Shown here piece by piece: positions 47,094-53,196 of a stretch of 64,000 nt of DNA. Numbering within the stretch: the stretch's first letter is position 1; every line of letters begins with the position of its first letter. The notes under the pieces were generated by a model, which saw nothing but the letters and a program-made list of their open reading frames with translations, was not told the DNA's origin and did no database searches. A program made the translations under genes and the position numbers. Source of the stretch: Salpingoeca rosetta (lineage: Eukaryota; Protista; Choanoflagellata); assembly GCA_033442325.1 (NCBI GenBank), contig JAWQFM010000026.1, positions 656,170 through 720,169 of the forward strand, written 5' to 3'.

Positions 47094-47350
47094 TGCAGTC
47101 TTGATGTTGATAATGATGATGGTGGTGATGGGTTTGGCAGTGTGTGTGTGTGTGTGTGAGTGTGTGTGTGTGTGCATTGTCTTCAACCACTTGGCTTGTT
47201 GTGTGTGTGTGTGTGTTGTGGTGATTGTACATAAACACAGAAAGCTCAGCCGCCCACTTCGTTGATCGTACACACACACGCACGCACGCACCATCCGCCG
47301 TTGCTGTGTGCTGTCGAATTTGTATTTCACTCAGAAGCCAAAAAAGGTAA

Positions 47351-47450
47351 NNNNNNNNNNNNNNNNNNNNNNNNNNNNNNNNNNNNNNNNNNNNNNNNNN
47401 NNNNNNNNNNNNNNNNNNNNNNNNNNNNNNNNNNNNNNNNNNNNNNNNNN
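47351..47450. other. Assembly gap (N run), intergenic
   Basis: Run of n characters. Confidence 0.99.
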
Positions 47451-47783: not shown

Positions 47784-48196
47784 TTAAAGGTACTGCGAGA
47801 GCCAGCGGAAGGCGTCGCCATAGCCCTGCTTCTTGATGACAGTGCACATGAACAGCTCGAGCGGGCGACTGGCCAGGCTGGACTTGGGCACCGTGCCCTT
47901 GCCCGTCGTCTGGCCAATGAGACCAAGCGCAGCCCGCAACTCCTCCTCGCCGGCGGCGCCGGGGATGTCAATCTTGTTGCCGAGCACAACAATTGGGATG
48001 TTCGAGATGGCCTCGTCCCCCAGCAGCGCCTGCACAAATATATTTGGGAAGGGGGTGTGAGTGAGTGAGTGAGTGAGTGAGTGAGTGAGTGAGTGAGTGA
48101 GTGAGTGAGTGAGTGAGTGAGTGAGTGAGTGAGTGAGTGAGTGAGTGAGTGAGTGAGTGAGTGAGTGAGTGAGTGAGTGAGTGTGTGTGTGAGTGA

Positions 48197-48231
<35 letters not shown>

Positions 48232-49144
48232 TGAGTGAGCGAGAGTGTGTGTGTGTTCTTGCGCAGAGCAAACGCGTTTTCCGTGTGTGCATTGTGACAT
48301 GCGGCAGCGTACGCACGTCGAGTTCTGCCTTTGATTCCTTGAAGCGGTCGCGGTCCGACGCATCCACCATAAACACAATCGCATTCACAGCAGGAAAGTA
48401 CGTCTTCCACACGCGGCGCGCTGGTTGTATGTAATATGGCGTGTTGTGTATTGTGTGTGTGTGTTGGAAGGTGAGCTTGTGTGATGGCGCAGAAGAGCAC
48501 TTGAACTTGAAGGATGGAGGTGAGGCCTTGAGTGCAAGCACGCACGCACGGACGGACGCACGCACGCACACACGGGCGGCGTACAACAACAGCAGGAGCA
48601 TTTGGTGTGAAGGCAGTGCTGTTGGGTGTGCCCACCTTGCTTGTGACCACCAAGATCGTGTGTTGTGAATGTGATGCCTGCAATGGAGAGCTCCTCCGCA
48701 GCTGTGCGCAACAAGCAATGGTCACGCAAACACAACAAAAGTGGTGATGGTGGGGTGCATGAGAAGGGGGATACCTGGAAGACAGAGCGGTGATGCACGT
48801 ACATGGGATTCGTACACACACACACACACACACACACAAGAATAGACGCGCACATGCACACATGCACAACCACGCACATGCACACATGCACACATGCACA
48901 GCTGCGCACACACAAGCGCAGTCACGTACGCTCACGCACGCAAACACACAAACACACACGCACACACGCAGATGCACTTACTTGGATAGAGGGTGGGCGG
49001 TGCTGCTTGCACGCGACCGTCCCTGAGCATGTTGAGGAGGGTGGTTTTGCCTGCGGCGTCAAGGCCAAGGAACACGAGCTTGCCGCTCTTGTTGGCCAGG
49101 CCAAGCGAGGACAGCAGCCCCCAGAACCAGTCCACCAAAAACAT
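47784..49144 (-). CDS. SAR1: SAR1 small GTPase (COPII); 4 exons
   Basis: Exons about 49144-48982, 48701-48636, 48421-48317, 48030-47784. '[37 protein letters not shown]', 'PTLYPTAEELSI', '[16 protein letters not shown]', 'LGNKID', 'GQTTGKG', '[27 protein letters not shown]'. Confidence 0.95.
48056..48182. repeat. (GAGT)n tetranucleotide microsatellite in the last SAR1 intron
   Basis: About 30 perfect gtga/gagt units read directly. Confidence 0.95.
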
Positions 49145-50445
49145 GACGCTGTCGTGGTAGTTGTCCAAGCCAGCAGCGAGCGCGGGCGCAGCAGAGTCCG
49201 CAGATGAGCCAAACATGCGAATCAAGTCCATCACGAAACGTCAGGTGAGCGTGTGGAGGAGGGACGTGAAATGAGAGAGGAAGACGTGGGAGATGAAGAC
49301 GTGGGATATGCGACACAGTGTTGATGTGGAGGGAGGGTTTTGAGAGAATCATCGAAGAAGCAAACATGGATGCAGATACACACTCAAGGTATACACACAC
49401 ACACAACACACACACACACAGATGCACGTACCGCTGTTTCCGCTGTGTCTGAAATATGGGGAGGGAAAGCTGTGCGTGTGTGCGTGTGTGTGTGGCACAG
49501 AGGAGAAGCGAGTCGTGAGTTGGCACACACAGCGAGAACAAACTCGACAACCACGCTGATAGATAGAAGAAGAAGAAGCGAAGGGAAAGAAGGCGGTGTC
49601 ACGACAACGCGAAATGTCCACGCGTGCACAACGACAAAGAGAGAGAGAGAGGGAAGCGACACAACCCGTGCTTCTGTGTCTCCGCGCAATGATGGGGGGT
49701 GGCAAACAATGCAACAAAGCACGCACACACGAAGCAACAGCAGAGGAAAGCGAAGGAAACCCAGACACACACATACACGACACACATGTGGTGTTCCCGC
49801 TGTCCGTGTTCGATGCACACTCAGGCACAGAGCAACGTCACAGCAAGCAAGCAAGCAAGCAAGACAAACACTCACATCACACACAATGACAAGGCACGCA
49901 CCCCAAAGTCGTCGTCAGCCAACGAATGAGGACGTGGACTCGAAACACGAAAAGCGAAGGAAATGAAGGGAGGTCGAGCAACCAAATGGGATATAAATAG
50001 GACATACCATGGGCACGCACAGCATACAAATAGTACATCATAAAAGACTTGAATCAGTCTCACATCTCACACGCGCCAAATCAGCACCAGTGCAGATATC
50101 AAAAGGAGCAGCACAGCGACACCGCGACGCGAACTTCGAAGGCGCAAAGACACTCAGGACACTGCCTCTGCGCTCGCACTCCTGCACAAGCACTCACCAC
50201 GACCACCAAGCAAGCAAGCGCAAGCAAGCGCAAGAGAAGCGACGGCACCCGACACGACAGGCACGGTGGCCAGTTAGTGAAGTCAAGTACTTTCTTACTT
50301 TCAAATCAGCAGTTCCATTCGCCTATTCGCCTTCATAGACCAGCTCCTCAGCTCACCGAAGGCTCGAAGCCGACCACCACAGCACCAGACCACCCCACTC
50401 TACTCCAGCCTACTACGAGTACTACGACCATAACAGCCAGCCAAC

Positions 50446-53196
50446 ATGAACCCTGAGTACGACTACTTGTTCAAACTCTTGCTTGTTGGCAAGAGCGGGG
50501 CTGGGAAGTCGTGCTTACTGCTTCGCTTCGCAGAGGATACGTTTACTCAGTGCCACTTCACATCGTCCGGAGGTGGGGTCGACTTTAAGAACCACACAGT
50601 GGAATTGGATGGCAAAGTCATCAAGCTCCAGATATGGGACATGGATGGTGATGAATCCCGGTTTCGGACTATCACATCATCGTACTATCGAAGCGCGCAC
50701 GGGATCATTGTCTGCTATGACGTCACCGACAAGGATTCTTTCGACAATGTCAACTACTGGCTCCAAGAAATTGACCGCTACGCTCACGAGAACGTCAACA
50801 GGCTTCTCCTCGGCAACAAAATCGATCTGGAAGCAAAGAAGCAAGTGGACCATGCCACTGCCAAGGAGTTCGCAGACAATGTTGGCATGCCTTTTCTTGA
50901 GGTTAGTGCAAAAAACAACATTAACGTGGAGGAGGCCTTCATGACGGTCGCTGCAGACATCAAGGCCCGCATGGGACCGACGATTATGAAGAAGAAGGAC
51001 CCACTCGTCCTCGAGTTCAAAGCCAAACCGTCCGTCAAGGCCCGACGACGCGTGCGCCGGGGCGTCGCTGATACCATGTGCGACTGGATTGAGAAGAAGC
51101 AAGGCAACTTTCCACACATGTGGCAGCGCCGCTGGCTCGTCCTGAGCGACACACAACTCACATACACCAAGACGGAATGGCAAGGCGAGAAGCCACGCGG
51201 CACCATCCCCCTCACCGACATCTTTGAGGTGGAGGTCCCCGACCTCACCAAGCCCCTCTTCAACCTGCACACGCCCAGCCGCACCTACTTCATGAGCGCA
51301 AGCTCGATGGATGCCCGCGACAAATGGTTCTCCAAGATTAACCATGCCATGAAAGCGGTTTCGTTTGAGGAAGTCTCGCTTACGCACGAGTTCCTGGACA
51401 AGCCGCGTGGACAACACGGCCGCGTGCAGGTGGCAAAGGTGTCGTGTGAGCATATCACCGCATCCGTGGCCGCCTTCAAGTGTCTGCACTTGCGCAACAT
51501 TGTCCTTGACGTGGGCATGGTGGATGCCTTCACTGCGGAAATCAACCTTCTGCGCCAGGTCAGGATCAACCACGAAAACGTTGTGGCGTTCCTGGGCCAC
51601 GGCCAGATGCCCATCACCGCGCTTGAGGAGCACGAGAGCACAGACACCATTCGTGACCTGAAGCAGGAGCTGCCGCTTGTGCCTTTCTACCTGATGGAGG
51701 CGATGGACATGTCGCTGCACAGCTTCCTGTTTGACCCCTGCTGCCCGCTCACCGCCGCGCAGGCCCTGCACTGCATGCGAGCAGCCATCAGCGCCGTGCA
51801 CTACCTGCACTCCCGCACGCCCTCCATCATCCACGCCGACATCAACACGCCAAACTTTCTCGTCAACGCAAACTTTCACGTCAAGCTGGCAGACTTTGGC
51901 TGCGCGCGCGCCGAGGAGAGGGCAGACACCAAGTTCACGGACGTCGTGTCCACCCCTGGCTACGCCGCCCCGGAGGTGTTCAGCACGGAAGGGTGGACGA
52001 AGGCCATTGACGTGTTCAGCCTGGGCGTGGTGCTGTTTGAGCTGTTGCACCAGCGAAAGGCGTACCACTACGATGGGTCTGGCTGTACGACGCTGGAAGA
52101 GTACAAGCGGCGCGTGAGCGCGTTTGAGCTGCCGCAGGTGGAGGAGCCAACCACGGACCTGGCCAGGCGGGACGCAGCAAACGAGGACCTGCTGCAGACC
52201 GCAATCCACTCATGTCTTGGCAAGGCCGGCACCCGCCCGTCGCCAGTCCACCTGCTTGACCCCTTGAAGAAGTCCCGTGAGCTGTATGACGCGCGCCCGG
52301 TTGCCACGCCCGCGTGGCTGGGCGCCAAGATCACACAGGTGCAGTCCCATACGGAAGACACGCCTGTGCCGTCGCTGAGCACGGTGGACCGGGCATGGCT
52401 GCCCAAGCCGCGAGGAAGCAGCGAGGAGGGGGAGGAGGAAGGAGATAAAAGTGGCAACAGCGATCACCTTGCAGATGGTGGCAGTGACGGCAACGCGCGC
52501 ACGCAGGCCGCTCACGAGGAAGCACAGGCAGAGGGAAGCAGCAGCGGCGGCAGCAGTGGAGAGGAAGGGAAGCAAGACAAACAAGAGAAGGAGAAGGAGA
52601 AGGATGAGAATGGGGAGGAGTGGCCCGAGTACGAGTATGACGTGTTTATCAGTTATCGCAAAGAGTGCGACCGTGTGGCTGCCGAGGGCGTTGCAGACCA
52701 GCTGCAGCACGCGCAGCTCCGGGTGTTCCTGGATGCAGACTCCATCTTGCCGTCACACGACTGGCAGCAGACGTTCCAAGATGCCCTGCGCCGCTCGCGC
52801 CTCTTCCTCCCGCTCATGTCCCACCGCTCGCTCTGTGAGACGGGCCCGTGCAATGGCTTGCACAACGTGACGCCGACCTCGCCCGTCGACAACGTGCTGC
52901 TGGAGTATGAGATGGCCGTGATGCTTGCAAGCAAAGGGCGCATGTCCATCTTTCCTGTTGGCCTGGCAGAGGGTGTTGATGTGCCTGGCCGCGGACGGGC
53001 CATCTTGCCGTTTGGCGATTTTGACTTCCCCTCGCGCTGCCCGGAAACAGGGACACCCACGGCGCCGGACGGCAGTGTCAGGGCGACGATGGAGGCGGTG
53101 TTTTCGCGCCAATTCCACCGCTTGGACCCAGAGGACCGCGCAGCCAAGCACGTGCTCGCCCGCGATGTCGCCGCAGCCGTCAGGCGCCTGCAATAG
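50446..53196 (+). CDS. Intronless 916-aa fusion protein: Rab1-like GTPase - PH domain - TKL-type protein kinase - acidic linker - TIR domain
   Basis: Rab1 (about 50446-50973): '[15 protein letters not shown]', 'IKLQIWD', '[11 protein letters not shown]', 'GIIVCYDVT', 'LLGNKID', 'FLEVSAK'. PH (about 51076-51354): 'WIEKKQG...WQRRWLVL...PRGTIPL...RTYFMSA...DKWFSKI'. Kinase (about 51364-52270): 'HENVVAFLG', '[13 protein letters not shown]', 'VKLADFG', 'TPGYAAPE', '[12 protein letters not shown]'. TIR (52636-53193): 'YDVFISYR', 'RVFLD', '[13 protein letters not shown]', '[10 protein letters not shown]', 'IFPV'. Confidence 0.92.

Follow-up and report, generated by a model that had tools for sequence, protein, structure and literature searches.

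The 64,000-nucleotide stretch of the choanoflagellate Salpingoeca rosetta analyzed here (the window; GenBank assembly GCA_033442325.1, contig JAWQFM010000026.1, positions 656,170 to 720,169) contains, on its plus strand, a single-exon gene (50446..53196) with a complete open reading frame (ORF) of 916 amino acids, which ends with a TAG stop codon at 53194-53196. The encoded protein combines a Rab-like GTPase, a PH domain, a protein kinase, an acidic linker, and a C-terminal TIR domain in one chain. A first-pass annotation had proposed that this TIR domain retains a SARM1-type catalytic glutamate and may act on nicotinamide adenine dinucleotide (NAD+). Pfam assigned the Ras/Rab-like GTPase to residues 10-173 (50473..50964; PF00071, E 1.1e-52, 178 bits), the PH domain to residues 211-302 (51076..51351; PF00169, E 1.1e-12), and the protein kinase to residues 333-577 as matched (51442..52176; PF00069, E 1.5e-29). 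A low-complexity linker rich in Ser, Gly, Glu, and Lys, which belongs to no Pfam family, occupies approximately residues 637-730 (52354..52635) and leads to a TIR_2 domain of an extended type with the motif 'DNVLLE' (residues 731-916, 52636..53193; PF13676, E 2e-13). Judged by hydropathy only, the protein has no membrane span; the highest Kyte-Doolittle mean over 19 residues, located inside the kinase, is 1.35, and the usual threshold is 1.6.

The gene is transcribed. Stranded RNA reads from three runs cover the entire ORF including the TIR domain in the sense orientation of a plus-strand mRNA, at a depth of about 1-8x in the reads sampled (roughly a quarter of each run), and the reads of a neighboring minus-strand gene have the opposite orientation. 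No splice joints across the ORF were found in the RNA reads of the three runs, and neither these reads nor the DNA contigs showed sequence differences in the TIR domain.

The TIR domain and its nearest solved relative

The TIR domain had originally been placed at 52636-53193, which corresponds to residues 731-916, and all of the strings quoted for it are present in the ORF ('YDVFISYR' at 731-738, 'VFLD' at 760-763, 'MSHRSL' at 791-796, and a string of ten residues at 815-824). The proposed comparison of profile hidden Markov models with TIR_2 and SARM1 was carried out. The isolated domain matched TIR_2 (PF13676) with 51.3 bits (E 2e-13) and the whole protein with 49.2 bits (residues 733-841 matched), given a Pfam gathering cut-off of 28 bits; the classical TIR family (PF01582) scored 16.5 bits in the TIR region, which is under its cut-off of 21.3 bits. 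A single-sequence phmmer search of the domain against the PDB gave marginal matches alone (L6, E 0.057), so a profile was needed for this comparison. It was built from the TIR domain of the window and 25 relatives (26 sequences aligned with MAFFT) and searched against all PDB chains. The best match was the human SARM1 TIR (E 1.3e-16, 64 bits), with an alignment extending through alphaC and betaD, whereas the bacterial and plant enzymatic TIRs reached E values of about 1e-10 or worse in the N-terminal half only, and MAL and TLR2/15 had E values of 0.004 and 0.05, respectively. The earlier view that the domain resembles TIR_2 and SARM1 rather than the TIRs of Toll-like receptor (TLR) adaptors is thus supported.

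An AlphaFold2 model based on the same alignment had a predicted local distance difference test score (pLDDT) of 83-92 for model residues 1-70 and of about 90 for residues 101-110. Enzymatic TIRs ranked first in a Foldseek search with this model, i.e., RUN1 (6.7e-6), L7, and AbTir-3AD (root mean square deviation [rmsd] of 2.2 A), and the Foldseek probability was 1.00 for RUN1, L7, AbTir, and SARM1. The top structure in VIA-align was the SARM1 TIR (Z 11.4, rmsd of 3.0-3.3 A over 106-108 residues, model residues 7-129 on SARM1 561-691), with SPARTA TIR-APAZ, Caenorhabditis elegans TIR-1, and AbTir within 1 Z of it. An ESM Atlas model of the same protein matched bacterial TIR_2 models over residues 730-916 with TM values of 0.58-0.68, and it is from these matches alone that the fold of the C-terminal half draws support. 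The prediction of a homodimer from two copies of residues 726-916 together with NAD received a score of 0.05, which weighs neither for nor against self-association. Taken as modeled, residues 731-916 are a complete TIR_2-class TIR domain with a flavodoxin-like fold, and among solved structures the SARM1 TIR is closest to it.

A glutamate at the catalytic position

The codon at 52903-52905 is GAG and encodes E820, as previously annotated. The profile alignment, BLASTP, and Table S4 of Hurieva et al. (2026; bioRxiv 10.64898/2026.04.20.719644) equate this residue with E642 of SARM1 and E1118 of the S. rosetta protein F2UB80. It belongs to the alphaC motif (52888..52917), in which N816 (codon 52891-52893) occupies the Trp position of the WxxxE motif, and the profile aligns its 'dnvllE' with 'DWVHKE' of SARM1. 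The proposed homology of E820 to the catalytic glutamate of SARM1, plant, and bacterial TIRs is thereby upheld. In the AlphaFold2 model, E820 is residue 97 and lies in the first turn of the helix formed by residues 94-106 (alphaC), with a local pLDDT of about 90.

Both E820 and N816 are invariant in 18/18 TIRs of the 'DNVLLE' type, and E822 is variable. These 18 sequences comprise three environmental kinase-TIRs, a TLR-like protein with leucine-rich repeats (LRRs) and a TIR, a furin-repeat-TIR, and the F2UB80 group, and they amount to about seven effectively divergent sequences because 12 of them are near-identical paralogues. A higher count of 24/26 sequences with Glu was left unused, and the 18 were counted in its place, the underlying MAFFT alignment being misaligned around alphaC for distant TIR groups of the same genome. 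The three environmental kinase-TIRs (P0002-P0004) read 'YDVFISYR' and 'DNVLLE[HWY]R', and the alphaC readings of TIR paralogues in the same genome include 'DNFLTEMELA' and 'CDNVLLEWMAM'. The alternative that E822 is the catalytic residue was rejected; relatives have Arg or Met at this position, which is aligned with V644 of SARM1. Based on alignment, model, conservation, and the experiment on a paralogue described below, we are highly confident that E820 is homologous to the catalytic glutamate.

The SARM1-like spacing noted in the first-pass annotation holds only approximately. The distance from S792 to E820 is 29 residues, compared with 21 from S622 to E642 in SARM1, and the difference resides in the betaC-alphaC loop (S792-V814, 52819..52887), the counterpart of the 'SS loop' of SARM1 described in PMC8266388, which is longer by 8 residues. 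This loop is poorly modeled; at model residues 77-89, the pLDDT stays under 50.

The active site compared with SARM1

The numbering of SARM1 was taken from matches to the full-length protein, in which profile positions 15-134 correspond to residues 563-673. In the betaA motif (52636..52662), Y737, R738, and K739 align with Y568, R569, and R570 of SARM1. The BB loop (D763-W773, 52732..52764) begins with the counterpart of D594 and ends with that of F603, and S770 within this loop aligns with G601. S792 is the counterpart of S622, and N816 and E820 are those of W638 and E642. Identical or conservative counterparts therefore exist for Y568, R569, D594, F603, S622, and E642, and a long loop before alphaC is likewise common to both domains. 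In contrast, three residues of SARM1 are replaced (W638 by Asn816, G601 by Ser770, and H640 by Leu818), D627, K628, and C629 of the SS loop are not conserved, and the C-terminal half is longer than that of SARM1. With an Asn at the Trp position, the 'DNVLLE' TIR subfamily has a pocket that is different from that of the WxxxE TIRs.

The bacterial and plant enzymatic TIRs, e.g., AbTir, ThsB, RUN1, L6/L7, RPP1, and SPARTA TIR-APAZ, have the same fold (rmsd of 2.0-3.5 A over about 96-113 positions), the alphaC Glu, and a TIR_2-type sequence. They differ from the domain in the window in that the fourth residue ahead of the Glu is Trp or otherwise aromatic and the BB-loop Gly is present, and their sequence similarity to it is weaker than that of SARM1.

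An enzymatically active paralogue in S. rosetta

The TIR domain of F2UB80 (residues 1034-1255) was reported to be active and to produce cyclic ADP-ribose (cADPR) in Escherichia coli (Hurieva et al. 2026, Table S4 row 33). The catalytic residues in that study were assigned by TM-align to E85 of ThsB with a 3-A C-alpha criterion, and a point mutation of the catalytic Glu abolished cADPR production in all cases. For F2UB80, residue 1118 is listed, which is the Glu of 'DNVLLE' when counted along the ordered sequence. F2UB80 originates from S. rosetta ATCC 50818, and a locus of the genome under study (L020) encodes 7/7 tested fragments of its TIR in one frame; an eighth fragment, KYDAFISY, lies just upstream in another frame. 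The TIR domain of the window aligns with that of L020 in BLASTP with 21% identity (E 2e-7), DNVLLE on DNVLLE.

The two domains come from the same organism and are of the same extended TIR type with 'DNVLLE'; both have Asn where WxxxE has its Trp, and their C-terminal halves are conserved. Unlike the window protein with its Ser770, F2UB80 has kept the BB-loop Gly ('LETGVNF'), and it is a protein of 1352 amino acids with another architecture that belongs to a family of at least 12 near-identical paralogues. At least 12 similar TIR exons ('RQRGNRGL...CDNVLLEWMAMLEL'), most of them near-identical, are distributed over many contigs (loci L015, L016, L020, L021, L024-L027, and L030-L032), and a 'KYDAFISY' stretch is located just upstream in seven loci of this family, in four of them in another frame.

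Related proteins in the genome and the environment

The search of the S. rosetta genome covered 55.4 Mb on 68 contigs, with introns present, and gave at least 38 TIR_2 matches. The closest TIR resides in a protein of 1199 amino acids (L033:2613-6209, plus strand, contig C17) that can be regarded as TLR-like since nine LRR_8-matching stretches precede its C-terminal TIR. A furin-like-repeat protein of 1069 amino acids also has a TIR (L034:1770-4976, minus strand, contig C20). Both are of the 'DN[VF]L[LT]E' type and have kept the Glu, which makes the TLR-like TIRs of choanoflagellates candidates for catalysis as well. A multi-exon paralogue of the Ras-PH-kinase module is located at about 2001400-2003550 on the minus strand of contig C2 (L039:2916-5052); it shares 30% identity with the window protein over residues 53-442 and has no TIR_2 match nearby. 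Accordingly, the TIR domain of the window protein seems to have been added to an existing module.

A word-based homologue search with the full-length query returned three kinase-TIRs, and one with the TIR alone returned one short protein. Kinase-TIRs with the same 'DNVLLE' TIR are encoded by single long ORFs (L036, L037, and L038) on contigs of environmental eukaryotes, which come from one JGI metagenome and from Logan runs, and one of these proteins carries ankyrin repeats at its N-terminus. Lineages other than choanoflagellates may therefore share this architecture.

Comparison with known protein classes

The Kinase TIRs of choanoflagellates have been defined as proteins with a Pkinase and a TIR domain but without a membrane span (Richter et al. 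2018, eLife, PMC6040629). The window protein is such a Kinase TIR. It comes from a choanoflagellate, lacks a transmembrane segment as judged by hydropathy, and has a Pkinase domain (333-577) followed by TIR_2 (733-841) in one chain, to which it adds the N-terminal Rab-like GTPase and PH domains. In that study, the catalytic Glu was checked only in SARM1 homologues and not in Kinase TIRs. An orthologue of SARM1 itself was rejected, as ARM and SAM domains are absent and Pfam reported Ras, PH, Pkinase, and TIR_2 only. ROCO proteins (LRRK-like, with a Roc GTPase, COR, and a kinase) likewise join a GTPase of the Ras superfamily to a kinase within a single chain; the GTPase of the window protein is, however, Rab1-like (PF00071) rather than Roc, its PH domain lies between GTPase and kinase, and an assignment to ROCO was rejected given that no COR family appeared in the Pfam scan at E values up to 1. 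Roc/COR is among the architectures of active TIR proteins (Hurieva et al. 2026, Figure 3 abbreviations).

Possibly atypical upstream domains and flanking features

The P-loop of the Rab-like domain (GKSGAGKS) is intact, and its switch II reads WDMDGDE (residues 64-70, 50635-50655). The canonical switch II of Rab1 is WDTAGQE, and the fused domain would thus have an Asp at the position of the catalytic Gln. The kinase has kept VAAFK, DFG, and APE, and it reads HADINTPN (residues 463-470, 51832-51855) at the position of HRD..K..N. As far as these motifs tell, both the Rab-like domain and the kinase may be of atypical activity.

The N-terminus of the protein presumably resembles a typical Rab1 start. 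Over the initial 32 bases of the ORF (50446-50477), numerous RNA reads agree with it except for a T>C difference at 50454; on both sides they diverge, with CCCCCCTCGTTAGGACACACCAACCGCAAC upstream and a sequence coding for LLIGDSGVGK downstream. These reads are therefore cross-mapped from a canonical Rab1 mRNA, and the RNA depth peak at 50320-50607, whose reads carry T>C at 50454 and then Rab1 sequence, was rejected as expression of the fusion gene. The cross-mapping also indicates that, at its 5' end, the DNA of the fused Rab-like domain hardly differs from the Rab1 gene. Upstream of the gene, a small GTPase gene that looks like the SAR1 type occupies 47784-49234 on the minus strand; it is interrupted by several (CA)n/(TG)n-rich introns and is well expressed in the RNA runs. 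At about 47350-47450, an assembly gap is visible as N in the DNA and as a run of X in the translation.

Catalysis, scaffolding, or decay of the TIR domain

The best explanation of these observations, which we favor tentatively and with somewhat less than even confidence, is a SARM1-like TIR domain with a glutamate in the catalytic position that would process NAD+ when the protein is assembled. Enzymatic activity of the oligomerized domain is likewise a reasonable prediction rather than an expectation, and the retention of E820 fits what is known for TIR domains of S. rosetta. Several observations weigh against activity. The BB-loop Gly (G601 of SARM1), which is present in the other 25/26 aligned sequences, is replaced by S770 (codon TCA at 52753-52755), and this replacement is not a sequencing error because the DNA contigs and RNA reads contain no variant. 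The variants SARM1 G601P and AbTir G174A show little or no activity (PMC8266388; Manik et al. preprint), and the Gly-to-Ser exchange may weaken catalysis, oligomerization, or regulation. The aromatic residue of WxxxE is missing as well, with N816 in place of W638. The exchange W638A reduces SARM1 activity (PMC8266388), the exchanges W131A in L6 and W82A in ROQ1 abolish NADase activity, and the residue at Glu-4 is aromatic in 12/12 cyclase TIRs (Manik et al. preprint). The Asn is nevertheless not disqualifying since the active paralogue F2UB80 also has it. Moreover, only 4/29 protist and 12/61 animal TIRs that bear the Glu were active in the published screen (~15-20%), in which an Aphanomyces TIR with 'DNLLLEYEVA' is not marked as active (Hurieva et al. 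2026), and the C-terminal half of the AlphaFold2 model is of low confidence. The retained Glu is necessary but not sufficient for activity; this point, N816, and S770 were missed when the first-pass annotation suggested an enzyme.

Almost as likely, and also a little short of even, is a TIR domain that serves as a scaffold or adaptor only, docking on the TLR-like LRR-TIR protein and other receptor TIRs and bringing the kinase to them, with E820 unused and kept for structure or by ancestry. The closest TIR of the genome (39% identity, E 6e-17) is that of the TLR-like protein of 1199 amino acids, the receptor-like furin-repeat protein has the same TIR type, and a 'streamlined' Kinase-TIR pathway with TLRs has been proposed by Richter et al. 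(2018; PMC6040629). The human TLR2 TIR yielded no cADPR isomer in the screen even though its listed catalytic position holds a Glu, most Glu-bearing TIRs were inactive there (Hurieva et al. 2026), and a domain that only docks could tolerate being without the BB-loop Gly. S770 does not favor scaffolding over catalysis, however, because the BB loop also drives the assembly of scaffolds. Against a scaffold-only role, the Glu and the neighboring Asn are invariant over divergent architectures, and one member of the subfamily, F2UB80, is enzymatically active; catalysis and scaffolding are, in addition, not mutually exclusive, as the TIR of TLR4 has been reported to do both.

The domain could also be in functional decay, having lost BB-loop assembly by the Gly-to-Ser exchange after the fusion, so that it would be neither an enzyme nor an effective adaptor and the protein would work through its kinase. 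We consider this unlikely. S770 is unique among the 26 aligned sequences, the Ras-PH-kinase paralogue without a detected TIR on contig C2 implies that the module can stand alone, the betaC-alphaC loop is longer and poorly modeled, and expression is low in the reads sampled (~1-8x). Yet the frame is open to the C-terminus, betaA, D763, W773, S792, N816, and E820 have all been kept, the entire stretch 731-916 still matches TIR models, and Gly to Ser is a mild change. It appears very improbable that E820 serves another substrate or chemistry, with Asn816 altering ligand stacking; candidate reactions would be base exchange, the hydrolysis of cADPR, and the formation of 2',3'-cyclic nucleoside monophosphates (2',3'-cNMPs) from RNA or DNA. 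Such a use would accommodate the invariant Asn816 at the position that is aromatic in the cyclase TIRs, and 2',3'-cNMP synthesis has been reported as a second activity of plant TIRs and a TIR-fold cADPR hydrolase from Drosophila. The Asn-bearing F2UB80 makes ordinary cADPR from NAD+, which means that the Asn is compatible with the standard reaction.

Returning to the favored reading of an NAD+-processing enzyme, the TIR domains of several molecules would associate with one another by way of the BB loop, and betaA (S736, Y737, and R738), the BB loop (D763-W773), and alphaC would then make up a composite NAD+ pocket in which E820 would cleave the nicotinamide-ribose bond. The first-pass annotation had envisaged NAD+ depletion or cADPR-type messengers. 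By analogy with the paralogue F2UB80, which has the same motif, the product would be cADPR as a signal and not bulk depletion of NAD+. Signaling of the cADPR type thus seems the likelier output, and depletion is less likely because the entry for the active F2UB80 records none (Hurieva et al. 2026, Table S4); most active TIRs in that study did not deplete NAD+ either. The Rab-like GTPase, the PH domain, and the kinase might set the place and time of the TIR reaction or provide a second output by phosphorylation. A more specific and highly speculative idea, to which we give little credence, is that S770 is a phospho-switch. At a membrane, where the Rab-like GTPase and the PH domain would control it, the kinase of the same chain would phosphorylate the BB loop and thereby permit or block TIR assembly, gating Glu820-dependent cADPR synthesis within one chain.

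Significance

It has already been published that most eukaryotic TIRs other than those of TLRs keep the Glu and that a TIR of S. rosetta makes cADPR. With the general point established, the locus contributes one more testable case, in which the BB loop is unusual, and no new principle. The protein of the window stands out by this BB loop and by its unusual N-terminal module, and activity of its TIR domain is a plausible prediction. If active, it would unite a GTPase, a lipid-binding domain, a kinase, and a synthase of an NAD+-derived second messenger in one chain. As choanoflagellates are the sister group of animals, the protein is relevant to the question of which came first in the lineage leading to TLR signaling, TIR enzymology or TIR scaffolding.

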